From assembly GCA_016748015.1 (NCBI GenBank), contig JAAOMT010000778.1, forward strand, positions 4,945 through 68,944: DNA of 64,000 bases. Reading direction: 5' to 3'. Under the pieces are notes generated by a model. The model did no database searches. It was not told the DNA's origin and saw nothing but the letters and a program-made list of their open reading frames with translations. Below, piece by piece: positions 6,685-64,000 of the stretch (position 1 is the stretch's first letter; the number at the start of each line of letters is the position of its first letter). Both the position numbers and the translations under genes were made by a program. Source of the DNA: Geosiphon pyriformis uo1 (lineage: Eukaryota; Fungi; Glomeromycota).

Positions 6685-6713
6685 TTGTCAAAATTCACTT
6701 ATTTCCTTATTGT

Positions 6714-12326: not shown

Positions 12327-12367
12327 ATAAATGCACCATTCCCAAAACAGAGGTATCTTCAATTGAC

Positions 12368-22890: not shown

Positions 22891-22998
22891 ATCAATTGGA
22901 ATATCAATATAAAATACTTTGCATAATATCAGAGATATTAGAGTGAAAGTCAATTGTAGTTTTTTAAAAAATGTCTTGATCATCATAAGTTATGGGAT

Positions 22999-31830: not shown

Positions 31831-32278
31831 TTATTATTGATTTCCAAAGAATTTTTTTGTATACAACATCTATAAGATGTTAAAAAAAAAAACTTTTTTT
31901 TCTCTTTAATTATTATTACATAATTTACTATGTCTTAAATTTGGAAATTAAGTTTTTTACAAAGATACTCTTAATTATAATTAATTATTATTATTACAAC
32001 AGACTTAAAAATGTCTAATATCAATACCAATAGTAAAGTAACAACAGTTATACACAAAAGTACAAAAAAAAAGACCATCAATTATAAAAACCAAATGAAA
32101 AGAAACATTACTTTTATTACAAAAAAAGAAAAAAATAATACAACTATATGAAATTTAACAACAGTAGAGACTACAAAACCTACTATATTTACATTCAAAT
32201 TTAAAACTGGTAACAAACCATTCAAGAGTATGAACACAAATAATAATAATAATACACTTTTTAGAATTGCTAACACAT

Positions 32279-33556: not shown

Positions 33557-33599
33557 GTTGATTGAAAATACCTCTGTTTTGGGAATGATGCATTTATTT

Positions 33600-34875: not shown

Positions 34876-34938
34876 ATTGTGTTTGTTTATAAAGAAGTTA
34901 CTAATAATTAAGTTGGTTTGGTTTGAGAGGTTGTACTA

Positions 34939-37900: not shown

Positions 37901-38688
37901 TCTCATCATATCTGATAGTCAGTTTACAGAGTTCATAATTAAGCAAAACTTTTGCTTTCTTGAGTCATTCATTGCCAACTATTATAGTATATTCTTTTGC
38001 TTTAGATACTTCTATGTCAGTTTTAATGCTAATACCATTGATTTAGACAGAAACAGCTTTGGCTATGCCCAGACTTTTTTTTTGTCACCATGTATATTGG
38101 TTATTGGTCTTGTGGATGGTTTATCAATTTTTCTGCCAATTGCTTCTAAGAAGTGTTTGGCAATGATGCTAACAGATAATCTACTGTCCAGAATCAGATT
38201 AATGAAGTAACCAGCCACTTGGGCTTTACAAATAAGAGAGGTAACATTGCTGTTGTCAGCAAGTTCAGCTTGGCATGGGCATTTGTTGATCTTTGGTGTT
38301 TTTTTCTTGGGAATCAAAGATTTGTGAAGGTCTTTTCTGAATTGGTAATGGGTCATTAACCGGCCAAAAGTAATATAAGCAGGCATTTCTATAAGATCTT
38401 TGACAACAAAATAGAGTCCAAATTTTTGTATAATTTCTGGAAGTTCCAACTTTAGAGAATTTTTAAAAACTTTAGTTTTTGGTGGCTCATTGTTATCAGC
38501 AGTTGATTTGAATGCTTTGTTTAGATTTATAATAAAATTAACCTTGGCTTTCTTTTTTTTTTTTGTTAATTCAGAAGTGTTAATTGCTAGTTCATTCATG
38601 TTATGGTCATCATTAGTTAAGTTAAAAGCATAAAAAAGGTTTTTTCTGGTTGGCTTGCACTCTTATCTTTTGGAAGTATGCCTACTAG
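34939..38688 (-). pseudogene. pol: Gypsy-A pol PR-RT-RH (A5), interrupted by the F solo LTR
   Basis: LILDS protease, CFCVDY..LN, YPLPKID, TAFITKYG, NANALSR. Confidence 0.9.
35675..36737 (-). repeat. Gypsy-F solo LTR
   Basis: Matches 46663-47643. TSD ACAG/GCAG. Contains a 13-bp tandem array at ~36245-36350. Confidence 0.9.
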
Positions 38689-41600: not shown

Positions 41601-42772
41601 TAAGTTTGGGCAGCAAAAAAGGTAACAGCCATTTGGAGAGCAGAAGCCATAATAAGAGCAAAAGCAAAAACTGGAAGTGTGAATTCCAAGTGCATTCTTT
41701 GGTTGTCTTCAATTTGTTGGGCAAATTCAATGGGTATGTCTATTGTGGGATTGTTTTTTAGGGCCAAAAAGAGCCAAAGTGCATAGGACAGATCTGTTTT
41801 TAATCTTTTTGTAAAGGAATAAAACTTTTGTTCTTCTGTTCAGTTTCTTTCAGAATCTACTCTTTTAATTAACTTTCTGATGACTTTGGCATATTCAGTT
41901 ACCACTTCACTAGGATCTTGGATTCTTTTTTCTAGTTCCATGTACTATTTAGATATCAAAATAGGAGTTCTAAATTTTATTTCAAACCAGGTAGTAAAAG
42001 AGATGTTGTTTTTTTTGGCATTTGTTGGTGCCCATTTAATGATTCTTTATTGAACATTGGCATTGGTTTCTTGTAAGAACCAAGTAGCAAAAAAGTCTTG
42101 AAAATAGCCACCAATGATTTGGAACTTATATTTATTATTATATTGATTGGCTGTGGCAGCTCTTTTAAAGTCATTCAACCATTCAATTGGATCTTGTGTA
42201 TTACCTCTAAACAAGGATAATAGAGTGTTGTTTCTTCTTCCCAAAGCAGTTTGTATGTCTTGGAGAGCAATTAGAATGTTCTGTTGTATAGGATTATTAG
42301 CCATTGGTTCAGAAATTACTGTTTGAGTAGAGTGATTTGATTTATTTAAGAAAAGATCAAAAACAAAAGCAGTTTGATAGCTTTCTTTTTTTGTTTCAAG
42401 AGGAGTTTTAGTTGATTGATGAGCAGCAATCTAAGTATAGATTTGATGATTCAGATATTCGAAATCAGAGGGCTGTTATTCAAAGATTGTGAAATATAAA
42501 AGCTAATTGATGCTGTTGTTTTTTTCTTCAAAGTTGTCTTCAAAATAAGCTTAATTAAAGTAATAAGTTGTATAGACTGTATAGGTTTCAACTGAATGCT
42601 TATTCAAAAACCAGTTCCAAAAGTCTTGAAATTGTCTGCTGAATTGTTTTTCAATAAGGAAGCAAATCAAGCAAGAGAGCAAAAAATTGAGTTCAATAAA
42701 GTTTAAATTATTTTTGTTGTGTGCTTCAAAGTGTTCTTTTGATTGTTGTGACAGGTATGAATAATCACCTAT
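38682..42772 (-). pseudogene. gag: Gypsy-A gag (A5), interrupted by C3
   Basis: ORF pieces 42551-42820 and 42047-42304; zinc-knuckle remnant at ~41385-41425. Confidence 0.85.
38779..41214 (-). mobile_element. HAL-C copy C3 (ORF1-only), best preserved copy
   Basis: Long poly(T) at 38779-38794; 5' motif A8CTTTTTCTCTC; TSD GACATTGTT lies ~95 bp beyond the 5' end. Confidence 0.88.
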
Positions 42773-42825
42773 ACAATTAGGAAACAAAGTGAATTTTGAC
42801 AACTTTACAGGAAGCACCACTTTTA

Positions 42826-43466
42826 TGTTACAGATTGGAGTAACAAGCTAATGGATAGCAAAGAAGAACAGGATTGTAGAGTAATAGAAATAATCAAAGG
42901 AATTTCAATTTCAAGGAGAGAATTAAATGAGTAAGGATTCAATGTGTGAAATTAATCTCATAAAATATCTTAGTCACTGTACTTTTCAAAAGATAACCAG
43001 AAAATCTAAAGATAAAGAAATAGTTTGTACTGTTAACAAATAATCACACACTGGTATAATTCTATGTCTTACATTGGTGCTTTTAGAATTCAATATCAGG
43101 TATTAGATGTACTCTTTAGTCACATTTTATTCAATAATCTTTAAATGTTGCAAATACACATTCAGAAAAAGGGTAGATAAATGCTAACAAGTAATCTTTT
43201 ATCCCAAGATGTTCAGATACTTGAAAATAAGAAAAGAGAAATTAGTGATAAGAGAAGAATTGAAATAAAGTTGTTATTTTATTTTATTTTATTTTTTTAT
43301 TTCTGCATGCTTTTCTATAGCTAAAAAATTCATCACTTATATAGCTATCAAAAGTAGTTAATGATCAGGTCAATAATTACTATCTAAAAATAAAATGGCT
43401 AATTATATGATATCAGTGGCTAATACATGTGATAATTAATAAGAAGTATAGGTTTCAACTATAACA
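42826..43466 (-). repeat. Gypsy-A 5' LTR of A5
   Basis: Adjacent PBS acaggaagcacca at 42807-42819. Confidence 0.92.
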
Positions 43467-46400
43467 ACATCAAAAAAAACAGCTCTACATAGGCAAGCAG
43501 CAGACTTTTTTCCAACAACAGCCAACAGACTAAAAGAAAAAACCAACAAAAAATACAGACATATTGGAAAAATAAGTGTAAAAAATCTAACTAAAAGATT
43601 TAACCAAGTAATTAAAAAAGACTTATCTGAAAACACAATTAATCAAACCAACAACTTTGTTTTACAACCAATGTTTAACAAAAGAGAAAATAATAATAAA
43701 TTCCAAATAAAAACTTGGATTAGTGAAAAAAGCATTCTAAAGTTCTTAAGAAAAATAGGCAAATAAAAGCAGCTCTGAAAAAATGCAATTCTAAAATCTT
43801 GAACAAAATCAACAATAGAAAATCTGTGAAGAAAATTGAAAAGCAATAAACAATTCATTTATTATAAACAAAAATTTGGCTAATCTAGATAATATTATAA
43901 AAGATATTGAAGACTTTAAATTGGACCTATCAAGCAGAATAACAAGTTTAAGTCCAGACCAATATGATAGTAAATTACTTGGCAAAAAACCCATGTCTAT
44001 GAAATCAAATCAAGAGGAAAAATAAAAAACTGTGGTTTATGGAATCTAAAAACATGTGCTTTTTGTACAGATATTGGACATACCAAAAAAAACATAAGAA
44101 AGAAAGTGGAGTGAATTTACAATTTTTTGAGAGATGTCAATTATCTTTTAGGAGCTGTGATAATAAAAAACCAAGAAATTTGAATGGATTTCTTCCAAGT
44201 TGTAAAAAAAAATCAGACCAGAAAAATCCTGGTAAATAAGAAAATTAAATTATTTCTAATGACTACTGATAACATTACCAACCAAATAGCCAGTCAAAAA
44301 AAAGTTCTGATAAGAAATATCTCTTTAGATATTTCAAACAGAGAAATAGAAGCTGCTATAAAAGAATTTGGTAAGATTAAAAAAGTTCAAATCAAAGTGG
44401 CCAGAAAATGACAATTAATAATAGTTGAATTTAACAACCAAAAAAAAACAACTAGAGCTGTAAATTAATAGTTAATTATAGTCAAAAAAAATGCAGTCAG
44501 AATTTACTTAATAATAAAAACTCAAAAGACTATTAAGCAAAAAAAAACCTAAGAAGCTAAACTTGTAGGTCTATTACAGAATTGTACTGTTTACTATTTG
44601 AGTACCACTCTAAATCAAATCAAAGCCCAATTTTGCTTTATTCTAAGAACTAGCAAGAATTATACAAAGATGAATTGTGTTTACATAGAATTTGACAGTA
44701 AAGTTAGTCACAATAATGCAACCAACAAGCCCTTGGTAATTGAGAACACACTAGTTTACTGATGCCAAAGAGTGCCACTTTTGTTATTATGTAGAATATT
44801 TAGTCTTTAAATATCTAACTCTGCATAGAAAAAAAGAGAGAAATACCAAAAAAGTTACCAATAATATAAAATTGGCAAAGCTATATGTTAGAAAAAATAT
44901 TCTAAAAAAACTTATCAAGATCTTTGATAGAAGATTATATGTCAAAATGACTGCATTCAAACTGTTTTATAATTTGAACAATGCAAATTCAAACAGATTT
45001 CAAAAACTTGGTTTACAAGTAAACAATAAAAAAAACCAACCAAAAAAAAAGTAAACTAACTATAAAAGGCTGAAATTAATAAGTTAAGACAACAAATTAA
45101 TAAAATGGCCAAACTGCTAAATAAAATGGCTGCCAAACTTGAAGTAACAATAGAGGAAAAAAAAATAGTGACTTAACAGCAAATTCATATTTCAGAAGAG
45201 AAAATAGAGATAAAAAATAGAACATTAAGTCAGAATACAATATCCAAGTCTAACTTAACAAAAAAAAAGACATACAACTCAGAGACAAAATCAATGAAAT
45301 TAAAAAAACATTAAAATCTATTCTGATGTTGTTAAAACAAGTGAAAAAATAAGGTAATTGGAGCAGTCCTATTGTTAAAAAACCTAAATCTATGAAAACA
45401 AATAATGTGTACTATATCCAATTTCAATATAGAACAGAATAACTCTAATAATAATACTTGAAAAATTAACACTGTTAATGTTAAAAGACTTAATAATTCT
45501 GGTAAAACTAAAAAGATGTTGTAATAGATTATAGAAAAACAATTTGACTTTGTAATTATTAAAAAAACTAAACTGACTTTACTTAAAAAAAAAAATATAT
45601 TGTTTAGTTTTAATAAATATTATGTCTTTTGGAAGTCAAGTACTGAAAAACAAATAGGAATTAAAATAGATATACTGATTAAAAAATATTGGATGCACTA
45701 TGTTGAAATAATCAAGAGTTATTATGGAAGACTATTATATTTGGTGTTGAAATTTAGAAATAAAATTAGTGTATACATGGTAGAATTGTATATGTCTGCT
45801 TTAAAATCAACTATTGAAAAAACAATAGCAAAAAAAATTAAAAAACCTTTGGAAAATATTGTGTAAAACAAAGAAATAACTATTGTAACAGACAATTTGA
45901 ATAAAGATTTGGTATCCAAATTACTTAAAAAAATATTTGCTACAAACAAAATCAAAGTTTGTTCAATTGCAAAAAATAAATTTGGTAAATACACATGGAG
46001 TATATACAACAAACAATCCAAAAAAAACATGAGTATTAAATAGAGTACAAAAAAAATTAAACTATATGTTTATTAATGCTATTACAGCCTTATTGGTTAC
46101 AAACATTAGAATAATTAATATCAATAAATCATTTAGTACTGATCACAAAACAGTAATAACAATTATCTAATTTAACAAAATCTTGACAAGCACTAAAAAA
46201 TTTAGATCTGGAAAAAAAAAGTAGCACAACTATGATTGATATTAAAAAAGCATTTGAGATGCAATGAAAAATTTATGCAAGAAAAACTGATTAATTGACA
46301 GATGAAGCACAAAAAAATCAATAGATAATAATAATAATAATTTAAACCAAATATGACTTATAATCAAGAAAACTATATTACAAGCTACTAATTATTTACC

Positions 46401-46662
46401 AAAAAGAAAAATAGAAGCCCAATCTGCATACACAAAAAAAAAATGCATAGATTATAAGCTTGTTAAAATTGTAGCTAATATAATCAAACAAATAAAAATA
46501 AACAATACAGATATACATAATAACAATGTTATACAGCTATTTACTAAATGGAAACAGTTGAAACCTAAAACAGTAAATACATATCTAATAACTCTCCCAA
46601 AAAATAAACTTATTACAGAATTACTCAGCATTAAAAAAGAAATACAGATTAATACTATATGT

Positions 46663-47643
46663 TGTTACCGGAGATTTTTGGTCTCTTTTCTGTAATGTTG
46701 TTGATACTTATTTGCTGTGAATTCACGTTTTTTGGATGTGGTTGAACCTCCAGTAACTGAATTTATCTTCAAATTATCTCCTATAATTTGAACTTGCTGG
46801 ACTTATGAGTGGAATGGCCAATTCCGTGCCAGTTGCTTTATGTAGTTACGTTGTAGTAAACGTCAACTCTTTCCCAGGAATTGCTTGTCTGGAAGCTTAC
46901 TAAAAAATGTGTAGTTACTTTGCTGTGAAAGTCAACTCTTCTACAGGAATCTCGTCTGTAGGCTACCTTAATGATTGTAATAAGAAAAGAAAAGAAAAAT
47001 AAAAGAAGTGTAAAAGAAATAGGATTTTTATTAAGGAAAACGTTTTCTATTCAGGCCTGGAGTCACTAACAGTTTACTGAAATTGGTAGCTAATCAATTT
47101 CGAAATGTTAGTTGGGTTTTTGGGGGTTTTTTTAAGTACAATAATTAAAGAATTTGGTTTTTCGAATTATTTGATATTTATTTTTTTTTGTGTGTATAGA
47201 AATGGTTTTTAAGAGATAAATCTAAAGTAAGATACATTTTTTCGAAGAAAAAAGCTCTTCTTTTATACAACTTGTTGTAACACTATTCTATGAACTTGAA
47301 CTTTGCTATTTTCTACAATTTCACTGAACTAAAGATACATTTCGGCAAACTACAAGTTATTTCGGTGAACTATTAGATATTTCGGTGAACTATCAATTAT
47401 TTCGGTGAATTTCTACAAATTTCGGCGAACTTCTGAATGTTACATAGTTTGGAGTATTGCATGATTGATCATCACAATTAGGTTACATTTGTGTTGTGTA
47501 CAATTTGAGTTATTAATTAAATGATAATTTCGGACATTTTTGCTAATGTAATAAGTGATCATTTGAAACGATAATATGCTAATTAATGATAGGAATTATA
47601 AGATAATTTCATGCTAAATAATATCTAATTTTGTCTGGTAACA
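46663..47643 (-). repeat. Gypsy-F 3' LTR (981 bp)
   Basis: Near-identical to 49762-50348 over the shared part; 20-bp TTCGGYGAA repeat array. Confidence 0.92.
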
Positions 47644-47818
47644 TAACTTCCTCCTCAAGACTGAGCTCCATCGAAGTCCAAGTACTGTCTGTTATTTCCA
47701 GATAATAATCCAAAATTATTGAAGAAATTTGGTCTGAAAATTGTTGAAATTTCAGTTCTGTAAGCTTTCCAATGTATTGAATCTTCAAAGGTTGAAAAAT
47801 TGGGTTTTGTAGTATGTG

Positions 47819-49680
47819 TTCACAAGTGTGAAATAGTGGTGTGGTTATGAGAAGGGTTTCGTTGTTGTTGTGCTGCAGCTCTACCTTCCGAGGGTGTAGT
47901 ATGGTGAAAATCCTGTTCTTCTGGCATTGTTAAATAACTGGGTTGAGTGTGATAATGGTTGAATCTTGGTTGAGTGGTATTTCGGGGAACCAATTGGTTG
48001 TTTAAACTGATTCTACTGTTGTTTACTTGGTATCGGTTTTGTGGTGTGAATTGATTTTGTGTAATCAGTCTTCAAGCAGGTACTTGATAATGTTGTGTGG
48101 GTGGTTGTTGGTATTGCTGTTGGATTGGTTGTGGGGTGGGCTGATAATAGTTATTTTGGTATTGGGGTCTTGGTGGATAGTAAGCTGGTGGTGATGGTTG
48201 ATAATAAGATTGCTGTGGTGGAGAGTAACGTTGATTACCCCTATTTTGTTGGTCTCATTGCAGCTTTCTGCAATCTCTTTTCCAGTGGCCAGAGATTCCA
48301 CAGTAATGGCAATTTTGGGGCTGGTTATTGGAAAGTAGTGCAAAGTTATTTTGATTTCGTCTTTGGGGTGGTTGATATCTTTGGGGTTGTTGTTGTTGGT
48401 TGGTAAAATAGTTTTCGACCTTCTTTGTGAGTTGGTCAATTTTTTCTTCAGCTGCTGAGCTGGTTTTTCCAATTGCCAAATTTACAAGTTTTGTACGATT
48501 GGCTTCTTCTATGGCCATTTCGTATCTTTTCACATGCTGTATTGCAGAGTTTAAATCTTCTGGCGCATGTGGGCGAACTTTTTTAATTAGTTTGTCTTTT
48601 AGACCAGTGATAAATTGATCCAAGATTTGTGCATCAGAATAATAATCGTTTGTTTTGAGTTGGCGAATCCATCTGAGAAGTTTGTTGAATTTCTCAATAT
48701 AAGTCATAACGGATTCGGAGGGTTCTTGTTTGATATTTCGAAAATGATTGCGAAGAGTGATGGAGGTATTATTGTCGGTGAACTGTTCAAGGAAGGCTGC
48801 TTTGAAAGCATTCCAATTATTGAATGGGGCAGCAAGGTTTTCAAACTATTCTCCTGCTGTTCCTTTGAGAAAGTAGGGAATTGTTCTTAACATTCTGACA
48901 GTGTTCCATCCATTTGCATCTCCAGCTTTAGTAACTTGGTCAAGCCATTCTTGGGGACTGGTCTCAATATCTTCTTCATTGAATTCAGGGATTTTTGCAA
49001 TGTATGTTGTCATTTTGTCTTCTTCGTTTTCACTGTCTATTGATTCTTCTTCAGTTATTTCAGAGTTGTTTTTTTTGTTTGCTGCTGTCTCAAAGTGTTC
49101 ACTTTGATTTTCAGCTAGAAAATCAAGGAGATTGGAACTAGTTTGAAGGGGTTCTTGTTGTCTGGTGGGACTTCTGAGTGATGTAAAATCTTCTGGTCTT
49201 GCAAATCGATTCAAGGGTGAATTAGGTGTTTGTGCTTGTGCAAGTGAAGCTGGAAAAGGTGTGATAGTAAGTGGAAGTTTTGAGCTGGTTCTTTGTTCAG
49301 GTGTTTGTAAATGTTTGGCAGTTGTTTTCAGTAGTGTTGGAGTATTTGGGGTGGTTCTTGAATATTGCTTTAATTTGTTTTTGCTTTTGTTGCTTGTTTC
49401 TGTTTCCGATTCAAAATCAATAGTGTATTGAGACTGCACTGGATATGTTTCTTCACAGTATTTGATAATGTTAAAATTAAGTTCATGAAAGTAAGTGGCA
49501 AGTGTTTCACTATTAAGGTCTTCAGTTCCCAACTGTAAATAGTGTGCTAAATTATTGTAAAGGTTGCTTCTAACTTCTGAGATATTGTAATTTCCAAAAA
49601 GATAATTGTTGATGTGGTTTTCAATGTATTGGTATACTGATTTCTTGACAACTTCAATTCCGTCTGGACTGTTGAATCTT
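47819..49680 (-). pseudogene. gag: Gypsy-F gag (capsid, CCHC knuckle, Q/P/Y-rich tail) with a few in-frame stops
   Basis: KIPEF..SPQEWLDQV, PYFLKGTAGE*F, DQFITGL, CHYCGISGHWKRDC. The stops look like TGG>TAG and CGA>TGA transitions. Confidence 0.88.
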
Positions 49681-49761
49681 NNNNNNNNNNNNNNNNNNNN
49701 NNNNNNNNNNNNNNNNNNNNNNNNNNNNNNNNNNNNNNNNNNNNNNNNNNNNNNNNNNNNN
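49681..49761. other. Assembly gap (81 N)
   Basis: Run of N. It must hide ~400 bp of the 5' LTR plus the PBS and gag start. Confidence 0.98.
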
Positions 49762-50348
49762 CTGAAATTGGTAGCTAATCAATTTCGAAATGTTAGTTGG
49801 GTTTTTGGGGGTTTTTCTAAGTACAATAATTAAAGAATTTGGTTTTTTGAATTATTTGATATTTATTTCTTTTTGTGTGTATAGAAATGGTTTTTAAGAG
49901 ATAAATCTAAAGTAAGATACATTTTTTCAAAGAGAGAAGCTCTTCTTTTATACAACTTGTTGTAACACTATTCTATGAACTTGAACTTTGCTATTTTCTA
50001 CAATTTCGCTGAACTAAAGATACATTTCGGTGAACTACAAGTTATTTTGGCAAACTACAAGTTATTTCGGCGAACTATTAGATATTTCGGTAAACTATCA
50101 ATTATTTCGGTGAATTTCTACAAATTTTGGCGAACTTCTGAATGTTACATAGTTCGGAGTATTGCATGATTGATCATTGCAATTAGGTTACATTTGTGTT
50201 GTATACAATTTGAGTTATTAATTAAATGATAATTTCGAACATTTTTGCTAATGTAATAAGTGATCATTTAAAATGATAATATGCTAATTAATGATAGGAA
50301 TTATAAGATAATTTCATGCTAAATAATATCTAATTTTGTCTGGTAACA
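49762..50348 (-). repeat. Gypsy-F 5' LTR (partial, cut by the gap)
   Basis: Matches 47077-47643. Confidence 0.92.
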
Positions 50349-50490
50349 ATGTTAAAATTAAGCTATAACAACAAAGACAAATAGTAGACAATATTAATTA
50401 CTAAAAATTTAATATTTAATTTTTTTTATTTAATAGATTTTAAACAATTTTAAAAACAAAAAATAATTTTTTATTTAAGCTTAATATATA

Positions 50491-53400
50491 TTTTTTATTA
50501 ATATTTTAATAAAGTATACTTAAAAACTATCTAATACAATATGTCAAATTAAATAACTTAAATTAAATGTTAATTATGTATTTTTTATATATAACCAATT
50601 ATTCAAGTTAGTCAAAGCACTAACTAAGCTGAACCAAAAGAAGCCAGAAGTAAATTTTATTTATTAAGACTCTTAATAATACCATTTAAATTTCTAAAAT
50701 TAAAAATAAACTTACTTAAAAACAATCTACTTTTTTTAATACTATTTTTAACTTTAAAACTACATATTTGCCACAAAATAATTATATGATTACATGTTTT
50801 TTCATTTAAAAAATGTGTTTTGGCAATACTTAAATTATTATTATTCATATTATTAAATTTATTAGTTTTAAGACTAACAAAGTTTTTAGACATATTAATT
50901 AAAAGAAAAACAAAGTTTTAAAAAACATTAAACATAATAAATAAATTTTTTTCAACTTTGTAATTTTTGCACATATTTTTAACACAAAAAAAATAATCAA
51001 AATAATCAAAAAACCAATAGATTTAATAATAGACTTTACCAAAGTAGTTAAACACAAAATCTTGAGACTTCAAAAAAATTAAACTTAAATTTAATAGCAG
51101 AATTAACAATAAGAACAGCCAAACAAGCAGCAAAAAAAAATTAGAGAAGCAGAAGTCATAATATAAGATTTATTATTAATAATAAAAAATATAAAAAGCT
51201 AAAAACTAACAATTAACTTAAAAAATAATTTAAAAAGAAAAAAAAAGACATTTTATAGTCAAATATTTATAACAATGACAGAATTTAAAAATTTCTCATT
51301 AAATATAATATTTATGTAAAATACAGTTTTTATCACAATAAGCTTTAGCTTCTTATAAGATTTAAAAATAATAACAGTAAAGCATTAATAATAATATAAA
51401 TTAAAAAAATAAAAAATAAAGCAAGTATAGTTACCAATTTGAAAAATCATATTACTAATTTCAAAAGCAATATAACTAAAAAAAAAATTAATCAATTTGG
51501 TTTTAAAAAAATTTTAAGAAGTAATTGCTTTTTTTTAATAAAAAAAAGAAAAAATTTAAATGTTGTTTTTTTTCATTATAACAAACCAGTTATTAAAAAC
51601 AGCAGCAATAAAAAAAGTTCTTAAAATTAACAATAGCATATTGTCACAAATCAACAGACTTCAATTTAATAAAGATAACAACACCAAAAATACCAAAAGC
51701 ATTCTTAATATTATTAAGAAATATACCAAAAAAAATATTATAAAGTACAACAAAAATAAAAATAAAAGAACCAGAAGTTACTATAAAAGATTTTACAATT
51801 TTAAGTATAATTAAAAAAAGAAAATCATTAATAAAAACTTTAACAGCAACAGTTAAAAAAGATTTAAAAGTAAAATTTACATAAAACAACTTAATATTGT
51901 TTTTAAAAACCAACTTGGATCTAATAAAGTCAAACAACAGATAAATAAAAAATTAACAAAAACCAACTTAATTTTAAAAGTATAATTAGAGATTAAAGTA
52001 AAAACCATTTATTTAAAAAATTTTTAATAGCTAAAAATTGTTTTTTAGATATTATTAAAGACAGCATCAGAAAACAAAAAAACAAATATTGATTTAGTTT
52101 TTATCTAATTAATCTAATATTTAAAATTAAGTAACTAAATAAGTTGCTTTGTTTTTAGAACTAACAATAATTTGTTAGAAAACATTATATTTAACAATAA
52201 AACCAGTAATAAATCTTGACTTATTTTAAAAAACATATTATTGTTATTATTACTTATATTAAAAAAAAAACTGGTTGTTGTTAGAAAAATTTTATCCAAG
52301 ATTTTATTTGAAATCACAAAAAAATTTGGTATAACAATAATAAACACAAGCAACTGTCATTGTTTTTTTGATTTTTTGGCTTTTTTAGTTATTTGTAAAG
52401 AAGTAGTAATAATATTAGTAATAATAGCAAAGAAAATTAGCTTATTAACTAGTCTATTATTAAATACTTTTGAACTCATAAAAGAAATAAAAACAACACT
52501 AAAATTAACTCAAATGTATTTCTTAAAAAAAACTTTAACTAAAAAAAAACCATTAGCCAAAGATAAAAAAATGCTTTAAAAATTGTTAAAAACAGTTTTT
52601 TATTATTAATATTTAAAAAAAATACTGCTATGATATTCTGCTTAGCTGTTTCAATAATAAAAAAACTTTTTTTCATTAAAATTTTATTAATTACTATAGA
52701 AAAAAGCAATATTTAAAACTTTTTAACTTTTTACTTTAATTGTAATTATTGTTACTAGTAAAAATTTAAGATATTAATTAGTATAAAAATATTCTTATAA
52801 TTTTTTTTATTAATTAGTATATATTATTATTTTAATTTATTACTCATTATTTTATCAAATTATTTAAATTACTATTTAATTAATAATCTAATTTGTTTAA
52901 TACACAAATTATAATAATTAAATTACATAATACTCTAAACTATATAATATTTAAAAATTTGCCAAAATAATTAATAGTTTACTAAAATACTAAATAATTT
53001 ATAAAAATAATTTTTAGTTTGCCAAAAATATATTTTTAATACAGTAAAATAATAGCAAAAAAAAAATACAAGTTTATAAACTAGTATTATAACAAGTTGT
53101 ACAAAAAAAAACTTTACTTTTTAGAAAAATGTATCTTAGCTAAAATTATTTTTTACTAAAAATATTTTTTTTAATATTAATACAAATTATTCCAATAAAA
53201 ATTACATTAAAAAACAACAAAATTCATAATTATTTTACTTAAAATTCTTTAAATTTCAACTAATGTATTAAAATTGATTAATTACTAATTTCAATAATTT
53301 GTTAATAAATTTAGGCCTAAACAGAAAATAATTCTCTTAATAAAATTCCTTTTTTTTTATGTTTTTTTTGTTTTTTTATTATAATTATTAAGGTAGTTTA

Positions 53401-53702
53401 CAAACAAGATTTTTGTAGAAAAATTGACTTTTACTACACATTTTTAGTGAACTTTCAGATAAGTATTTCCTGAAAAAAAGTTAATTTTTCTTGTAAAGTA
53501 ACTATACAAATAATTGGCATAAAATTAGCCATTCTATTTATAAGTTCAATAGTTCAAATTATAAGAGATAATTTGAAGATAAATTTAATTATTAGAGATT
53601 TATTAATTTCTAATAATTAAAAAGTAATAGCAAAGCAATAACAACAATATTTAAGAAAAAAAACCAAAAACCATTAATAATATTATAAAAATAGAAAAAA
53701 AA
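50491..53702 (-). mobile_element. HAL-C variant C4 (ORF1-only, LINE-D-type 3' tail), extremely AT-shifted, with nested F solo LTR
   Basis: 51250-52749 aligns to C1-C3 ORF1. 50491-50620 aligns to the LINE-D 3' end at 53812-53940. Confidence 0.78.
52750..53682 (+). repeat. Gypsy-F solo LTR, old
   Basis: Reverse-complement match to 46663-47643; TSD TTAT/TTAT. Confidence 0.82.
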
Positions 53703-56700
53703 ATCAATAAATTTTATTTTTAATATTAATAAAAATTTTTTAATATTTAAAATTTTTATTAAATTACAAAAAGTTTTAGAACTTATTAATTATTAATAAT
53801 ATATATATATATTTTTTTTAATAATTTATGAATAAGGTCCAAATGCTACTTAGTACAATATATCAAACTAAGTAATCTAAACTAGATGTAAATTATGTAT
53901 TTTCTACATGTGACCAGTTATTCAAACCAGTTAGAGCAATATTATAGATCTATTATAATAGATATAAAGCTATCAATACCAGAAAAAAAACTGCAAGACT
54001 TGTAAAAACCAAAACTAATACCATGTGTCTTCAATATTAAATAACCTAATAATATTATTAGAAAGCAAAGACAAAAATTCATGAATAATAGAAAGCACCA
54101 AATTATTACACACAATTAAATTTTTTTTCTTTAAAATTACCCTAAACTTAGCTTTTACCAACCACATCTCTGTTCAGTAAGCAATTTCCAAATCTCTTAC
54201 CAAATTAATAACCATTTTGTCTGCAATCTTAGCATACTTGAATACTGACAAAGTCTCCAAATATCAGTTCTTAAAAACAAAACTCTTGCACAAAGCCATA
54301 TATATCTCAAAATTAGAGGCATATGTAGAAAGCATCTGCATAATTCAAGATAACAATAGGCCCAAATCTGACAAAGAAATCCAATAAGCCAAGTAAAAAT
54401 TAAGTTTGCATAAGTGGCAAAGTTTATCACACATGTAAATAAATAATTAAGAAGTTTCATCTCTCTACAATGAAGACATAACACTCTAGAATATATTCTG
54501 TTATACAGTTGTTTTCTAATAGCAAAAACAATAATATAAAGTTTTTATAAAATACAAGCACAAGTCAATCATGAATTTACTAGTAAAACCAACTGCCATA
54601 TATAAGTCAGAGTGCCAAACTAATAAAGTACCTTAATTTATATCTTTAATCATATTAGTACTAATAACATTAGATTTAGGCCCAACTTTTTAGCAAGCCT
54701 AATGAACAACTCCAAAAATATTATTAGTAAATTAATAAATATTATTAAACACTATCATCTTACTGGCCTTTATAAATTTTTTCTTGACAAAAACAGAGAA
54801 TATTAAATTTAAATACAAAACCAAGTTGGCCAACTTATCAGCATGTTTATTTTCCAAAACACCTAAATGATTTTTAATCTTAGGCCAAGATACACTAATT
54901 CTTCTGTTTTTAATAGAGTTTACAACACTACACTTTTTTATCCAACAACAATTATGAAAATCTGGCAGAGCCAATTTCAATTCAGCAATGCATGCATCCA
55001 AAGTGGCCTGATTGTTTGAATGTACTACAACATAACTACCAGTCAGAACACACTTCAAAGTGAAGACAATAGTTTGTAATTTAGTTAACATTAAAGAAAC
55101 CAAACCACCAACTTTGATACCAACATTCAAATTCAAGTTAGCAAAAAATGCAGCTGCATTACATCTCATCTTATACATACTCAAGTTTTTCAGAGAACCA
55201 TTTATGTAAACATTGATAACATCGAAATTGGCATTAAAAAAATACTGCCATATTGATAAAAAACCACTAGAATCAAAAACACTTGAAAACAAGAATTCAT
55301 CACAAAAAGGCTAAACAACAAAACCACAAGAAAAGCAGACCAAATACTTGTATGCCAATTTGAACCATTTAGAAACAGAGCCTTTGGGATTGAGCTTCTT
55401 TCAACAATAAAATCTCTTTCAATTGAAAACTAAGTCTTTTTTATCATACAATTGTTCAACAAAAGCAATACTGAACCTTTTAAGTGATTTAAAAACATTA
55501 TAGAACACTAAATCTCCCAAAATAGAAGATATTGGAGTGCCATCTAAAAACCAAAACACAGATGAGAGATTGTTATCAAAAGCCATATTATATTCTAAGA
55601 AAATTTTTACCACACCAGTCAGAAAGTTGTTAACTAGACTAATTTCAATCTTATTGAAGTTTGTAAAGAATAAACAGGAAACCAACTTGAAACTTATAAG
55701 TCCAAAGATCTATGGTCAAATAAATAACCAAAAATTTTATAAGCATTCAAAAATCACAACACCAAAGCTGACTTACTTTCTATTTGCACCTGTTTAAATA
55801 ATTTCAAACTGTATAAAGATGGATAATAAAGAGCTTTATTAGGAAAGTCTTTAGACAAACCAGCTTTTATTTTTAAATCTTTTTTGATTAGTGTATTCTA
55901 TTTGATATATACACTCTTAGAAACAAAACTAAATTGGATTCTGTAACCAATAATAGAGTGCAATACTACTGAGACCAAATAAAAAAACTGTTTATCCAAA
56001 ATAGTCTTTTTCAGAACCATATTAGAAAAAAACTTGACATTTACATAAGCTTTTACCAAACTAGATTTGGACAAACTCTCAAAAGACAAAAAAATATTCA
56101 AATACCAATAGAACTTCCCTTTTTATGTGATAAAAATTGGCAATTTATTAATCAGTAATAAAGCATTTTTAACCCTCTAATTGATAGGAATGGTTACTGT
56201 CTTATTATTATTGATTGAAATGTTATTAATTTTGAAAAAACTATTCACAATGTCAAAAATATGTTGAGTGATTACCTGACTACACCAAACCCAAATTGTG
56301 CCATCAACAAAAGCACAAATTACTAAAAATAAAATTAGTTCACTCTAACTCACTAATTTGTTTGTTTTGACAATAAACTTAGTATTAATACAGTAGTCAT
56401 ACAGACCTTTTTGTTATTTGACTTTACATAAGAAAAGATTATAAAAGATTCTCTAAAGCAGAGGAAAGAAAATCTCACTCTGGTCCAGACTATTATGCAC
56501 ATAGTACCCATTGGTCAAACCATAATTAGTTATAACTTAATTGACTCTATTATCATAAATTTTTCCAAAGAATTGAATAAACTGCTTATATATTTTAATC
56601 TTAACCAAACTATTTCTTAGATAATACCAATCCACAAAGTCATAAGTCTTTCACATATTCTATAAGACTAACCAAAGCTCATGGCCCTTTTTTAAAGCAT

Positions 56701-57989
56701 CTTCAACTACTGAATTAATAGCAAAAATAGAAGACTAGATGGGAGTATTTTTTAACACAAAAAAATTGTTACCACAAAAAACATCAAATTTATTACATGA
56801 CAAAGAGATTCTATCAGAAAACAACTTAAAAAAATTTTTTTAAAAAGTTTCAATCAATGCAATTGGTCTAGTATTAGTCAAAATACCCTTCTACTCATAA
56901 GGCTTAAGAATCATTAATACTCAAGCTTCTTTTCAAGGTTGAAATACAGATTTATATACTAAACAAAGATTCAAAATATTTAAAAACATATTAAGCACTA
57001 TTACTTATAGAAATTAAGAGTATTATAGTTAAAGGAATAGTCAATTAGAAATAAGCATAATAACAAAAAAATTTTAGAATTTTTCTAAAAAAATTGTAGA
57101 ATTTTAGAATTTCAGAATTCCTTTAAAAAAATTGCAGGATTTCAGAAATTTTATATAATATAAAATATATATATATAGCAAGAGTGTTAAAAGCAAAAAA
57201 AGCAATTCTTAGAGAATTTAATAGAGTTTATATTAATTTAGAATAATATTTTTTCTTTAAAAGATAATTTTTTATGACTTAAAGTGAAATTATTTCCCTA
57301 TTAATAAAATTATCTATTATTATTGAATTCATGTTATTATTACTTGATTAAAAATATTAATTACTTTTACCATTATTAACACTTTATGTTAATAAAATCT
57401 AATACTTAACTACGTTAAACCAATAACTCTTGATTACAGCTATTAATAGGATACTAATTTCTTATTTTCTTTTTATTTTTTTTATTTTTTTTGTTGTTTA
57501 CTAAGTAATTAAAAGATTAACATGTGAAGTACTAACATTAGAAAAAACTAATAAAAGACCCAGAAATAAGGATAGACATTCAGAATTGAGAATAGCTTAT
57601 TAAGAGATACCAGCAACCAAGCTGAAAAAAAAATTGACAAAATAACTTTCTGAAAAGTTACAAACACCAAAGCATATTAACTTGAAAATTGGAAAAAAAA
57701 CTAAAAACATCACAAGAAGATATTACTATTGAATATCTGTTTATTATACAAAAGACTCAACCAAAACTTTCAGATATTACTAATACAACCAAGCTATTGA
57801 GCACCAAGTTACAGATTTGTTATTTGTTTTTATATCCCAAATAATTATCTGTAATATTTAGTGCTTTTTGTGAGGTATAATCCAACAAAAAACTAGCATT
57901 AGCAACAATCATACAGAAAAATGGCAGACCAAAAGAAAACAAGAAAAAATTACTTAGAATTTATAAAATCTTTATTTTAATATTATCTT

Positions 57990-58510
57990 TGAAAAACTTG
58001 TTAAATTGAAACTCCAATTATTCAAAACCCAAATATTAAAACCATGAACATTCAAAACTTACTTTTAATAAAAATTGTTAACTTCAAACTCTGAACATTT
58101 GAAACTTACTTTTAATAAATTTATTAAAAACTTGTTAAAATTAAAACTCCAATTATTTAAGATCTGATCATTTAAACCCTAAATATTTAAAAATTACCAT
58201 TAATAAATTCATTAAAAATTCGTTAAATTAAAACTCCAATTATTCAAAACCTGATTATTAAAACCCTAAACATTTAAAACTTATCTTTAATAAACTTGTT
58301 AAAACTCATTAAATTAAAAACTCTGATTATTCAAGATCTGATTATTTAAAAACTCAAACATTTAAAACCTGATAATTCCAACTCTGTTATTGTACAAAAA
58401 AACTTACTGTTAATAAAAACTTGTTAAATCTTTAGCAATTCAAACTCTGGGAAATATTTAAAAACTCAAACATAAAAAGTTCAATAAATTTCAAACTCTG
58501 CTATTATACA
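57990..58510 (+). repeat. Degenerate ~75-bp tandem repeats inside Gypsy-E
   Basis: Recurring GTTAAATTAAAACTCCAATTATTCAA...AAACATTTAAAACTTA...TAATAAA units. Confidence 0.7.
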
Positions 58511-58789
58511 AGAAAACTTATCTCCAATAGCCCAATAAAACCTAATTCTCACAGTACCAATAAATCAACAAAACTTATCTGATGGCTCTAAGTCAAAATA
58601 TTAGAACATAGTTACAATTCACTTCCATGTGTTATATATTTGAAAAAAAACCAATCAACAAGAACAAATAAGAATTGGAATCAGAACTTAATCCCAATTT
58701 AAACTCTACTAATGATGACAATAATTTAAACTCCACTAATAACAATGATAATTCAAACTCTGTCAACAACAATTCAAACTTTATTTCAA

Positions 58790-59010
58790 ATACTAAACAA
58801 TATATTATGCTTTTAGATCTTACAATAAAGCAAAAATTAACTTAATTTAATGATAATAATAAGGGCATTATGTTTGAATATGTACATAATACAAATACAA
58901 GATTTGAACTTAAATATTTTGGACAGACCACTATAGTTAAAAACTCTGGTTACATATAAAATTAGATTTAAAAATAGCAATAGAAATTACAACAACAACA
59001 TTAATACAAA
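58790..59010 (+). pseudogene. dUTPase N-terminal remnant
   Basis: KQYIMLLDL...KGIMFEYVHNTNTRFELKYFG aligns with KQYITLSDL...ESIMPECTHNANAGFDLRYSG at 5287-5415. Confidence 0.7.
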
Positions 59011-61531
59011 AAAAAAATTTAGAAAATTTTACAGAAGCTTAATATTAAAGGAGAGAATAATATTATTCATAGAAATTAAAAGTATTATAACTAGAGGAAT
59101 AGCCAATTAAAAGTAAACATAGTAACAGAGGAATTTCAGAATTTCTTTAAAAGAATTGCAGAATTCCTTTGAAAAAATTTCAGAATTTCAGGAATTTTGT
59201 ATAATATAAATTATATATATATAATGAGAGTATTAAAAGCAGAAAAAGCAATTCTTGGAGAATTTAATAGAGTTTATATTAATTTAGAACAACTCTTCCT
59301 TTAAAAAATAGTTTTATATAACTTGAAGTAAAATTATTTCCCTATTAATAAAATTATCTATTATCATTGAATTCATATTATTATTACTTGATTAAGAATA
59401 TTAATCATTTTTACCACTATTAACACTCCATGTTAATAAAATCTAATATTTAACTACTTTGAACCAATAGTTCTTAATTATAGCTATTAACAGAATACTA
59501 ATTTTTTATTTTTTATTTATTTATTTTATTTTATTTTGTTTACTAAATAATTAAAGGATTAACATACAAAGTACTGACATTAGAAAAAATTGGTAAAAAA
59601 CCCAAGAATAAAAGTAGACACTCGAAATTAAAAATAGCTTACCAGAAAATACTGGCCACTAAGCTAAGAAAAAAATTGACAGAATAACCTTTTAAGAAGC
59701 TACAAATACCAAAACATACTAATTTGAGGGTTGAAAAAAAAACTAAAAACATCACAAAAAGATATTACTATTGAATCTCTGTTTATTATACAAAGAACTC
59801 AACCAAAACCTTTAGATACTAAAACCTTTAAATATTACCAATACAACCAAACTATTGAGCACCAAGTTACAGATTTGTTATTTGTTTTTATACCTTAAAT
59901 AATTATCTGTAACAGCACCAAATTGTCACAATGTCTCCATAATTCATTTGTAATATCAAAAAAACCAGCAGTTTTTTCATCAGATAAGTTCTTAATTACA
60001 TGTACTAAGTTATCATAATTGATAAGATTTATAATATTGGAAAAAGCAGTATTATCAACATAAGCCAGCAACAGATATTGATGACATTACAGATTAAAAA
60101 CATGATTTAACATCATTCTCTTTCTTGTTTAATCCTTTATAATTGTATCAATCTTATTTTTAACCTTAACAAACTCTAGAAACAATTTACTATTAGCAAC
60201 TAAATAATCTAATATCATTTTCCAGAAAAAATGCTCCAAAATGCTCCTGATAGTATGGTTTTTATTAACTGTAAAGCTTTCCATTTTTCTATTGATAGCA
60301 GATCTAATGTGAACTTCTTTAGCCCTCAGTGACTTAACAAGTTTGCAGGCATAGTATAATTTTCTTATACCATAAAAAGCAAACTGCACACAATCAAAAT
60401 TAGTGCTAGAATTCAAAAAAACCTAAATAAGAGAAGTCTTGTTATTGTTCAAAAATGCCCAGCAGTTTATTAAAGAAGTAAACTTATTATTAATATTTTT
60501 ATGTGAAAATCTGATAATCTTTGAAACCAAAATTTCTAACTTATAAAACTTGAAAGAATTCTTAGTAAAAACACTATCAAAATTCTTAAACCACTTTTTT
60601 TTAAATATCTTATCAGCCAACAAACACACTATCTTGTAAACTACATTTTACATAGCATCCAAATCCAAGAATTTTTTAAAAGTAGCAAAATTACCAGAAA
60701 ACATTGCTGTATTGGCTGCTGTAAAATCTTTAAAATTGTTTTATTTTACTTTATTAGCATTTTTAACATTAAACTTTCAACAATTTCTGTTTACCTGTTT
60801 GTGCACAAGGTTAAGCTGCATATTTAACAAGCTGTTCAAATCCACAGAAACAGAAATAACTTGGTAGTTATTATCAAAGTAATTATCAACATTTACAATA
60901 TTACAATTCATTATTGCATTAACCAAATTTAAAAAAACAAAAATGTAATCAATTGTTTTCTTGACACCTTTGAAATTCTTCTAAGTTGAGACTTTTGCAA
61001 TTGGACTTTTGACCAAGGAATTAACCAACCTTAAATTGAAGTATTTTCCAAAACTAGCACATCTGTAAAAACCATTCTTATTAAAATCTCCACCCAAGAT
61101 AATAAAAAAAGATTCATTTACAGTCTTCAAAATCAAAAAATTGACCTTATTAGCTTGAAATAAACACACAGCCAAAGTGGTATCAGCATATAGCCCCAAG
61201 ATCAAAATAGATAATTTATTTCTAAAAAGCAGCTTAATAAACAAAAGCCTATTAGCAACTTCTGAAACTTTATATACATGTCTTGTCAAATTAATGTTTA
61301 TGATAACTATAACACCAAAACTCAAATAACCAAACTCCATATTAGAAGTAAACACCCAAACACTATTAAACTTGTTCATAATCCATGGACAAATTTTTTC
61401 TTTCAATTTTGTCTCAGTAACAATAGAAATTAAATTGTTTATATCTTTATGCCAATAAACAATATTAGCTTGTTTAGCAGAATTGTTTATATCTTTAACA
61501 TTATACATAGTCACTTTTTAAACAAGATTAA

Positions 61532-64000
61532 TCATTGAAAAAAATGAGTATTAAAACCCAAACCAGCATTATCTACTCTGGTCAATAAACCCATAACTGT
61601 GTCTGACAAATTGCTTAAAGTCTCCTCTAATTTTGAAATAACTAAAAAATTAAAACTTATTATTTTTGTAATAGTTTTACTACTAATAGCTGCATCTAAA
61701 CTCTTACTTATCACTATATTTGTCTCTTGATTCTATGATAAAAAAGTTATTAATGACTGACATCTAAGACTAGGCTGAGAAATTATTGATTTAAGTGTGT
61801 CCAACTTTTTAGCCAGCTTAACAACTTGTTTTATGAGATTGTTGAGACTGCACTCAAGAGTGGCAAACCTACAATCTAATTTTACAGACACCAACAGAAT
61901 AGATTTCATTTTCAAAAAGAAACCAGAATTAACTGAATCATTTCATGTAAAAAAAAGAAAAAAAGAGAACCCATTAACAATCTTAGCCTAAGGGATACTA
62001 CCAAAAGAAACATAATAGATAATTGATGCTGAATGTTTAGCATAAATGAATACCAGTCTGCTTTTATCTTTCTCTGATAATACTCTATAAAATAAACTAC
62101 TAAAAAGAGTTTTTCTACTTATAGAGCAGTCCAATAACATATGACTCAATTTCTCATACTTAACATATTTTACAAAACCTAAACAAAACCAGTACAAAGT
62201 GACACTTCTTAAAACTAACATAGTTCTTATAACACCATCCAGTAACTTAGTTAAGTTGAAACAAACAACTGCATATCTGGTCTGAGCATATAAAACTAAA
62301 TGTCAATTAATAACACATGTTTTTCATTTACAGAACCAATAAAATTCCAAATGTTATGAGCATTTGTTCCTATTGGTAATATATAAAGAAGTGTTTTATA
62401 ACAATCTTTTGTATCTCATGTTATTTTATTCAGATCTGTCCTGGCTATACACCATTACTCATAGAATATAGAAAATATAGTATTATTAGTCAGTAGATAT
62501 TAGCCAATTAGATATAGACATAGTAAATGTGGAATTCCAGGATTCCTCTCAGAGGAATTGCAGAATTCCAGAAATTTCAGGATTCCCCAATGAGAAATCG
62601 CAGGATTCCAGAAATTCCAGGATTCCTGTCACAAGAAATTGAGGAATTGAGGAATCTCAAATATGTATATATAACAGTAGCATTAGAAGCAGAAAAGACA
62701 GACTCAATACCAAGAATACTTAGCTTAGTTACCACAATCTTCAAATAAATAATTATTCACTATATCAAATCTATTCTTTGCTACCAACACTTCATGTTAA
62801 TAGTAACTAATACTTAACCATACTGGAACAATAGCTCTTGATCACGGCTATTGACAGAATACTAATTTGCAAATCGCCTTGGCTTACTTCTTATTTCTCT
62901 CTTTTATCTTTCTTTATTTTTTTTGTTGTCTACTAACTTGATTAAAGGATTTACTCTTGGAGGACTTACAGAGGAATAACACATACTTAAAGAATACTTA
63001 CTCTTGGAGGACTTATGGAGGAATAAACTTGCTTAAACAATACTTACTCTTGGAGAACTTACAGAAGAACTGATGTCAGGAAACAGCACTGGTATATACT
63101 TACAGAAAATATTGTACCAGAAGAATCATCAACCATCAAGCTGAGCAAACAATTGACGAAACTACAGTTTCAGGAAACTACTGATAAACTGTTACCAGTG
63201 AATCTCTGTCCATTATACAAAAAACTCAATTGGAAAAATCTTCAGATAAAATACCTTCAGATTATTATTGTTACTAATTGCTTTGAGCACCAAGTTATGA
63301 GTTTGTTATTTGATTTGAGACCCCAAAGAATCACCTGTAACAACACACAGCATCTTTTTTAATTAAGATGAACTATTTTACTGTAACCAAATCACTCTGA
63401 TTTGATTGGTCAAACTCTATTACAGCTTTTTGCCAAAGTCTCACCAATTGTATTTTAATCAACTTAATCAACCCAAACTCGGATAACATAGTGTATACAG
63501 TCTTAATTAATGTTTCAATTGGGATTTTTTTTATTATCACAGCTTAATTTAAATGCCCAATAGATTTTTTGAAATTAGTATTAACCAAGATTTTCACATC
63601 TTTAGCCTTTTCAGTAGTTTGTATTAAACTCAATTCAGAAATGAATATTGTTTTGATAATGCCAGCAAATTTTAAGGAAATAAATGTCTCTTCAAAACTA
63701 TTGACTTTTGAAAATAACTTTCTAACTATTACAAGCTTTTCTTGAGAAAATTTTCCAGTTATTTTATCCAATTTAATATTCAAAGTAAATGACTTTTTAA
63801 TGGAAACAACAACCAAATTCTTCAAAAGAAGAGAGAGAATTAGTGGAATATCCAACAAAATATTATTATTATTACCATTACTTAAAAAATTTATCTTGTT
63901 CAACAGTTTTTTCAAAGTCTTTTTGATATTAATATACAAATTTTTTGGCATTTAGTTGGCATTTTTGCTATTAAAAGTGGTTTTACTACCATAGTCAAAA
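61532..64000 (-). pseudogene. LINE-D ORF1, interrupted by a solo LTR
   Basis: Pieces 63544-63951, 61988-62221, 61733-61915 and 61532-61714 lie upstream of APE; RRM-like and knuckle remnants. Confidence 0.75.
62453..63342 (+). repeat. Solo LTR related to Gypsy-E
   Basis: Ends CACCTGTAACA; TSD ACAC/ACAC; shares blocks with 59061-59914; internal ~47-bp repeat x3 at ~62950-63065. Confidence 0.87.

Follow-up and report, generated by a model that had tools for sequence, protein, structure and literature searches.

Can a retroposon that encodes only an ORF1-type protein change the long interspersed nuclear element (LINE) on which it depends for reverse transcription? This question is raised by a 64,000-nucleotide (nt) stretch of the Geosiphon pyriformis genome (contig JAAOMT010000778.1), referred to here as the window, which contains four related elements on the minus strand: C1 (15498–17937), C2 (28279–30706), C3 (38780–41221) and C4, the 3′ end of which lies at 50491. 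A sequence-only reading of the window had taken the four for one family consisting of a single open reading frame (ORF) of the ORF1 type, and had proposed that this family parasitizes two autonomous LINEs through interchangeable 3′ tails, of LINE-B origin in C1 to C3 and of LINE-D origin in C4. Based on the window and on searches of the 128-Mb G. pyriformis assembly, we identify two sister families, C (C1 to C3) and C′ (C4). We consider it probable that the 3′ untranslated region (UTR) was replaced once in the C/C′ lineage and that a D-tailed and a B-tailed family were amplified afterwards, presumably by mobilization in trans. DNA of 66 loci was fetched and read, and scoring was limited to the best 40 to 63 candidates per search.

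The 3′ UTR of C4 (50491–50626, minus strand) comprises 136 nt from the ORF1 stop codon TAG (50626–50624) to an A-rich end, and it aligns without large gaps with the LINE-D 3′ UTR at 53812–53941 (minus strand). Thirty genomic LINE-D copies end at the latter site with an A-run followed by different, unrelated flanks, which identifies it as a true 3′ terminus. In BLAST searches the C4 tail matched 30 independent LINE-D 3′ ends with E values between 1e-9 and 3e-23. For comparisons at the family level, the consensus sequences of C, C′ and LINE-D were corrected for deamination, and global alignments of tails were scored as z values against shuffles. Nucleotides 2173–2308 of the C′ consensus match nucleotides 1541–1675 of the LINE-D consensus (73% identity, E = 4e-18), with 97 of 128 positions identical in the global alignment (z = 14.2) and an overall range of 73–76% identity between consensuses. 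Diagnostic tail positions were fixed in 16 of 16 LINE-D copies and in 7 of 7 C′ copies. The homology begins at the LINE-D ORF2 stop codon (53944–53942) and extends to the A-run, so that the shared piece is the complete LINE-D 3′ UTR; a 512-codon open frame in the LINE-D consensus stops where the similarity to C′ starts.

The tail of family C is of a different origin. Its last ~145 nt (consensus 2396–2540) match the 3′ tail of LINE-B at 27348–27494 (plus strand; E = 9e-18, z = 11.7), and the match was also observed in an alignment of two LINE-B and 14 C copies. Position 27494, the end of a 5′-truncated LINE-B body (17938–27494), is a terminus common to many LINE-B copies. All cross pairs (D with C, D with B, C′ with C and C′ with B) were at noise level (z ≤ 2.3). 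Both tail assignments made by the sequence-only reading thus hold, including the dotted C4/LINE-D consensus that it gave, which we could reproduce. The first 13–16 nt after the stop codon are alike in C, C′ and LINE-D ("TAGT..GCT.T"); this stretch may represent microhomology at the breakpoint and is too short for proof. In two C-type tails (L030:1498–1662 and L012:858–1017), we observed the LINE-B version of a central block including a 4-nt insertion, which may reflect repeated or later exchange with LINE-B or an intermediate subfamily.

The ORF1 sequences group the elements differently. DNA identity between C4 and C1 to C3 is only 60–66%, compared to 76–78% among C1 to C3, and the body of C4 is 34–42% identical at the amino acid level to natural C ORF pieces (tblastn). 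The fetched C′ copies are 76–79% identical to C4 and 65–70% identical to family C. C4 is therefore a member of a separate family, C′, and does not have the same ORF1 body as C1 to C3, as had been assumed. The two families can be aligned in DNA from the 5′ UTR and start codon to approximately nt 1800 of C′ (65.6% identity over 1.65 kb for C′ consensus positions 35–1800 against C). Beyond nt 1800 of C′, across the last ~370 nt of the ORF, there was no detectable match in DNA, and homology is apparent at the protein level only. Six G. pyriformis proteins of ~700 amino acids (P0090, P0087, P0089, P0091, P0107 and P0108), which are 77–85% identical to one another, share 44–46% identity with C-type proteins over their full length, C-termini included. 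ORF1 is therefore homologous end to end in C and C′, and only the 3′ UTR is of different origin. Amino acids 591–708 of P0090 map onto 50977–50627 of C4 (39% identity, E = 1.5e-14), and this C terminus stops at 50627, directly before the TAG that opens the D-type tail. We had initially considered the last ~370 nt of the C4 ORF as a foreign segment, and dropped this view when the natural C′-type proteins identified it as a diverged ORF1 C terminus.

By comparison, the ORF1 of LINE-D and that of LINE-B share ~27% and ~30% amino acid identity, respectively, with C-type ORF1, in the RNA recognition motif (RRM) region only. Among C, C′, LINE-B and LINE-D, the ORF1 sequences of C and C′ are thus each other's closest relatives. 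The ORF1 grouping ((C, C′), B, D) and the tail grouping ((C, B), (C′, D)) differ, and the histories of gene and tail therefore disagree. The 5′ ends of the C copies (17937, 30706 and 41221) have no similarity to the LINE-B 5′ end at 43471–43560. A third ORF1 lineage (P0110, P0113 and similar proteins) is 62–64% identical in amino acids to the C′ type (P0090) and 42% identical to the C type, and has a different C terminus.

C4 itself is a dead full-length C′ copy that was later split by a solo long terminal repeat (LTR). On the minus strand, its tail is followed by the C-terminal part of ORF1 (50627–50990), which has no DNA match to C or LINE-D and is homologous at the protein level, and by a decayed ORF1 body with a GC content of 17% (50991–52749) that is homologous to C1 to C3. 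A solo LTR of repeat E with TG...CA termini (52750–53682) occupies the start-codon region. The 5′ UTR of C4 resumes beyond it as a remnant (53683–53722, with an approximate upstream boundary) that aligns across the LTR to the 5′ end of a full-length C′ copy, L061. No target-site duplication of C4 itself was recognizable in its decayed flanks. Only ~90 nt separate the 5′ end of C4 from the LINE-D 3′ end, in a repeat-dense window in which GC content drops to 16–18% at 50–54 kb. Two matches in a loose self-BLAST, a recurrence of the first 80 nt of C4 at 47644–47727 and a continuation of the LINE-D tail homology into 46431–46664, proved on inspection to be extensions through AT-rich DNA. At another locus (L063:2053–2970 and 501–2041), 12 nt separate a C′ copy 5′-truncated at position 738 from the end of an E LTR; this second case of an arrangement observed in the window may be due to chance or to an insertion preference.

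The association between ORF1 type and tail type is strict across the genome. We searched with patterns in which a motif from the ORF1 C terminus is joined through a spacer to a motif from the tail, in all four combinations, with reversed patterns as controls; an earlier pattern anchored on an "MDY" motif had given 0 matches, and the counts are from a second pattern. The end of C′-type ORF1 joined to a D-type tail was found in 42 exact matches, and the end of C-type ORF1 joined to a B/C-type tail likewise in 42. There were 0 exact matches genome-wide for C′-type ORF1 with a B/C-type tail and 0 for C-type ORF1 with a D-type tail, and the reversed patterns gave 0 for all four junctions. The C′-type/D-type junctions coincide with the P0090-type copies obtained in the protein search, including three uninterrupted ones. 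Such linkage fits one old replacement of the 3′ UTR followed by separate amplification, and not free interchange; the interchangeable 3′ modules of the sequence-only reading are thus not upheld. What stands of its proposal is the use of two LINE tails, by two old sister families with 44–46% amino acid identity and not by one family. The conditions that it had named as refuting do not hold: D-tailed copies constitute a large family, located in flanks of their own, with 5′ truncations and a target-site duplication in at least one copy.

Both families behave as retroposons. For family C we observed at least 1369 candidates in the genome, and 30 of 30 fetched copies had common ends. The unit is 2.44 kb long and, in the deamination-corrected consensus, filled by one ORF of 765 codons. 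Direct repeats of 9–16 nt at the 5′ flank and after the A-tail were present in 18 of 30 copies, the 14 clearest of which are target-site duplications of 10–16 nt and the other four A-runs. Pieces of the C ORF contain two RRM stretches (Pfam RRM_1, 28.1 bits at a cut-off of 20.7) and a C-x2-C-x4-H-x4-C knuckle. Using the 3′ 860 nt of C4 including its tail as the query, a first look yielded at least 849 C′ candidates, and the 40 that were scored matched the query contiguously at 72–84% identity. The C4-type junction between ORF1 and tail recurred in at least 30 other copies retrieved with this query, and in C′ copies the tail directly follows the ORF1 stop codon. Among six fetched C′ loci, one is full length and five are 5′-truncated at various points, with a common 3′ end and different flanks; the full-length copy (L061) has a 9-nt target-site duplication, AAATTTCAA. 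The fetched C′ copies are extremely decayed (GC 9–21%), and 3 of the best 63 C′-type copies (C659:642422–644545, C651:1005194–1007296 and C705:145684–147804) lack a stop within 708 codons.

Neither unit encodes an endonuclease or a reverse transcriptase: C and C′ are 2.3–2.4 kb long and specify a protein of ~700–760 amino acids. They are dispersed inside many contigs in hundreds of copies with A-rich 3′ ends, and are not arranged in telomeric head-to-tail arrays. No tRNA-like sequence was detected in 38700–54100, and no Rfam family in 50300–54100. The hallmarks of target-primed reverse transcription are present, namely an A-rich 3′ end, 5′ truncation and target-site duplications. C and C′ are thus ORF1-only, non-autonomous LINE derivatives of the functional class of HAL1 and HeT-A. 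In a protein search, the 120 best relatives were all annotated G. pyriformis "hypothetical proteins" (G9A89_...). At least 120 gene models are thus copies of this retroposon ORF1, often grouped together on individual contigs, and such copies account for a sizeable share of the "hypothetical proteins" of Geosiphon.

The median divergence, calculated from transversions only, was 3.8% for C, 3.5% for C′ and 9.3% for LINE-D. LINE-D may therefore have been present during the burst of C′, and the ages are compatible. Decay, noted in the family C copies L001 to L030 and at 50000–54000 of the window, consists almost entirely of C-to-T and G-to-A changes (21% and 18% of sites, respectively, compared to 2–3% for the reverse changes). 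It was strongest at CpG, at 48%, whereas other contexts had 15–21%. The pattern resembles deamination of methylated cytosine more than repeat-induced point mutation of the CpA type. Four C copies (L010, L021, L027 and L030) carry 10–25 extra, copy-specific nucleotides between the 5′ target-site duplication and the element start, which may be untemplated or template-jump additions.

The putative helpers are LINE-D and LINE-B. LINE-D, on the minus strand, continues upstream of its 3′ UTR with the 3′ part of ORF2 (53942–56977), which contains the C-terminal part of the reverse transcriptase, an RNase H-like domain and a Cys/His motif, and which is collinear with LINE-B in tblastx including reverse transcriptase motifs. 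A foreign insertion of 2.96 kb follows (56978–59933), bounded by two ~0.9-kb copies of a repeat G; LINE-B is continuous across this point. The endonuclease, the start of the reverse transcriptase and the 3′ part of LINE-D's own ORF1 (59934–62445) are contiguous in at least eight other copies, and the 5′ part of ORF1 (63345–64000) runs off the window and is separated by a further G copy at 62446–63344. The LINE-B ORF1 with RRM and decayed CCHC is located at 43471–45100 (plus strand), with a second copy at 1364–2637 (minus strand). LINE-D and LINE-B are collinear through the endonuclease, reverse transcriptase and RNase H regions, and the motif types "..IDYIF..", "K(A/T)(S/A)G..DI..ELW" and "RPI(A/T)LI" are visible in them. 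Pfam gave almost no matches on the decayed LINE fragments, and the RNase_H match of LINE-D was weak (E = 0.004 and 0.05); the 512-codon open frame of the consensus of 16 LINE-D copies includes an RNase H-like block and the Cys/His motif. In three other copies (C663, C714 and C545), a D tail follows ~3.07 kb downstream of the 5′ part of LINE-D.

How could two sister families have come to end in the tails of two different LINEs, neither of which has an ORF1 resembling that of C and C′? Because of this combination, we favor a single replacement of the 3′ UTR. C′ is an abundant non-LTR family of ~2.3 kb with a single ORF1-type gene (two RRMs and a CCHC knuckle) and the sister of C, with a common 5′ UTR, an end-to-end homologous ORF1, and 3′ UTRs that differ from the ORF1 stop codon onward. 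The replacement probably arose in one of two ways: a LINE reverse transcriptase switched templates within the short shared "TAGT..GCT.T" stretch at the stop codon, or a heavily 5′-truncated LINE copy was inserted and read-through followed. Both families subsequently rose to hundreds of copies through target-primed reverse transcription. For copying in trans, each would have used the ORF2 protein of the LINE that supplied its 3′ UTR, with its own ORF1 protein acting in cis. The tail may thus direct the reverse transcriptase of the helper, and the change of the likely helper would have occurred once in the history of the lineage. A bolder version, in which an ORF1-only parasite of RNase H-bearing LINEs persisted over a long time and changed its helper by exchange of the 3′ UTR alone, at the stop codon, while its D-tailed branch keeps uninterrupted ORF1 copies, is one that we entertain tentatively, with slightly more doubt than confidence.

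Several observations weigh against a single replacement with helper-specific tails. The tails of C′ and LINE-D are ~75% identical and carry fixed differences, and therefore either the acquisition is old or an unsampled LINE-D subfamily is the real donor or helper. No intact LINE-D ORF2 was present among the 150 sequences that best matched the LINE-D RNase H region, open frames being at most 627 amino acids long, and accordingly no living helper was found. For the tail RNA shared by LINE-D and C′, three hairpins were predicted; the consensus fold is weak (−8.9 kcal/mol) and its energy no better than that of shuffles (z between −0.6 and −1.4). Apparent compensatory pairs are changes from G:C to A:U, and are confounded because C-to-T and G-to-A decay yields such changes in any case. 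The C′ consensus was built on 7 to 13 very decayed copies with GC contents of 9–21%. Finally, an autonomous LINE with a C-type ORF1 may exist, given that the best 40 to 63 candidates per search were scored.

The last point leads to the strongest competing explanation, which we nevertheless regard as unlikely. According to it, C′ and C lost ORF2 independently, as in the HAL1 model, C′ by internal deletion from an unsampled LINE-D-like element and C from a LINE-B-like element with matching ORF1 types, so that any exchange of ORF1 or tail took place among autonomous LINEs and not in the ORF1-only lineage. Repeated origin by loss of ORF2 has been described for HAL1 and for ORF1-only elements of Drosophila (PMC5753468; PMC13534243). 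Sampling of LINE copies was shallow, covering the best 40 to 150 among thousands of candidates, and a third ORF1 lineage (P0110, 62–64% identical to P0090) exists. Against this, the ORF1 is of the divergent type with ~27% identity in those LINE-D copies in which the 5′ part could be connected to a D tail (C663, C714, C545 and the window copy), C and C′ have their 5′ UTR and start region in common, and a C-type ORF1 followed by an ORF2 was present in none of the 66 fetched loci.

It is likewise unlikely, in our view, that the tail is no more than a remnant of history with no part in recognition, such that any resident LINE mobilizes C and C′ by relaxed, poly(A)-based, L1-like retrotransposition and no switch of helper took place. 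All four families (C, C′, LINE-B and LINE-D) end in A-runs, the tails have no significant predicted structure, and they have drifted to ~75% identity with the donor. However, both sister families keep a complete LINE 3′ UTR, with the stop codon and the poly(A) as its exact limits, ORF1 and tail are strictly associated in 84 of 84 junctions, and the LINE-B-like central tail block in some C copies (L030, L012:858–1017) hints at continued exchange with the partner. A local accident, whether a chimera restricted to C4, a LINE-D 3′ fragment inserted into one C copy or chance AT-rich similarity, as might be suspected from a GC content of 16–18%, nested repeats and the proximity (~90 nt) of a LINE-D 3′ end to the 5′ end of C4, is refuted by the recurrence of the same junction across the genome (at least 30 other copies, six fetched loci, 42 exact pattern matches elsewhere) and by the tail match itself (z = 14 against shuffles), and can be set aside.

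A single replacement of the 3′ UTR would place C and C′ between several known systems. HAL1 is a mammalian non-autonomous non-LTR retroposon that encodes ORF1p only and has to be reverse-transcribed by a LINE (PMC5753468). C and C′ are similarly ORF1-only and would similarly borrow reverse transcription from a LINE. HAL1, however, is an ORF2-deleted L1 of several independent origins that keeps the L1 ORF1, whereas the ORF1 of C and C′ is only 27–30% identical to that of the putative helpers. These helpers carry RNase H and are not shown to be L1, and, unlike in HAL1, the 3′ UTR was exchanged between helpers. Judged by this sequence divergence, C and C′ are not HAL1 proper, their ORF1 not being that of either putative helper. 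The combination of RRM and CCHC in ORF1 is the architecture of RNase H-bearing LINEs of the I superfamily (PMC4641428).

In Drosophila, new ORF1-only lineages originate from old ones that already lacked ORF2, and elements of the HeT-A type rely on the ORF2 of other families (PMC13534243). HeT-A and its telomeric relatives of the Jockey clade resemble C and C′ in being Gag/ORF1-only elements that would use a foreign ORF2, but they form head-to-tail telomeric arrays and are mutualists, whereas copies of C and C′ are scattered across hundreds of contigs and have target-site duplications. A change of a borrowed 3′ UTR between two helper LINEs was not found described for Drosophila ORF1-only elements in the passages of that source that were read.

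Tails from different LINE clades on one body are known from CORE-, V-, Deu- and Meta-SINEs (SINE, short interspersed nuclear element), and are attributed to recombination or module shuffling (PMC11481361). Mosaic SINEs and C/C′ are alike in having a 3′ tail homologous to the 3′ UTR of the partner LINE. SINEs are short and non-coding with RNA polymerase III (Pol III) heads, whereas C and C′ are 2.3–2.4 kb long and protein-coding with no tRNA-like head, and the shared tail comprises 130–150 nt in C/C′ compared to 35–61 nt in mosaic SINEs. Among fungi, the EKA family of Blumeria graminis (AVRk1/AVRa10) is a multi-copy family with RRM and CCHC that originated from the ORF1 of RNase H-bearing I-superfamily LINEs (PMC4641428). 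EKA is, like C and C′, a fungal multi-copy family derived from ORF1; its members are truncated ORF1 derivatives recruited as effectors, and are not reported to retropose as units that carry a borrowed tail. We found no description in the literature of a fungal ORF1-only element with an exchanged LINE tail, which is weak evidence of absence. C and C′ combine an ORF1-only organization like that of HAL1 and HeT-A with tails like those of mosaic SINEs, and are members of neither group because their ORF1 is not that of the helper, they have no Pol III head and they are not telomeric.

The window also contains other repeats and mobile elements. Repeat G is a high-copy repeat with copies that are 85–88% identical, at least 30 of them among the best genome matches, and is present at 56999–57854, 59061–59912 and 62446–63344, the last copy splitting the LINE-D ORF1. 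Weak ORF1 matches at 57006–57854 and 59069–59918 were rejected as copies of this unrelated ~0.9-kb repeat. The G copies that bound the 2.96-kb insertion in LINE-D are 82% identical and the insertion contains tandem repeats at 57958–58520; this G-bounded element may be a small LTR-type element. Repeat E is ~1.07 kb long, with TGTTACC...GGTAACA ends, internal 20-bp tandem repeats and LTR-like behavior. In addition to the copy in C4 (52750–53682), E copies are located at 35671–36736 (a solo copy inside a Gypsy element, with a short duplication), 46665–47643 and 49762–50348. The pair at 47077–47643 and 49762–50348 is 93.7% identical and flanks gag-like ORFs (47612–48845, minus strand) and a gap, and the two are therefore probably the LTRs of one younger element; the gap is a run of 81 N at 49681–49761, between these near-identical copies. 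ORFs at 20996–21723 (minus strand) with the DDE-transposase-like motif "LLLDNAGPHD" are nested in the LINE-B copy. Ty3/Gypsy elements with Pfam matches to gag, protease, reverse transcriptase/RNase H and integrase are present at approximately 6000–13700 (plus strand) and at 32230–38789 (minus strand).

In conclusion, tail borrowing of the type known from SINEs and an ORF1-only coding element meet in one lineage of G. pyriformis, in which the trees of gene and tail disagree cleanly. If a single 3′ UTR replacement with a change of helper is correct, it would mean that each of these fungal LINE reverse transcriptases recognizes the 3′ UTR of its own element, and that ORF1 and ORF2 proteins need not be related to function together. 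If the tail directs the helper enzyme, nature would have provided, in C and C′, two constructs that have an ORF1 of the same kind and differ in their 3′ UTR. Such a pair could address the template choice of RNase H-bearing fungal LINEs and the need for ORF1p and ORF2p to come from the same element.

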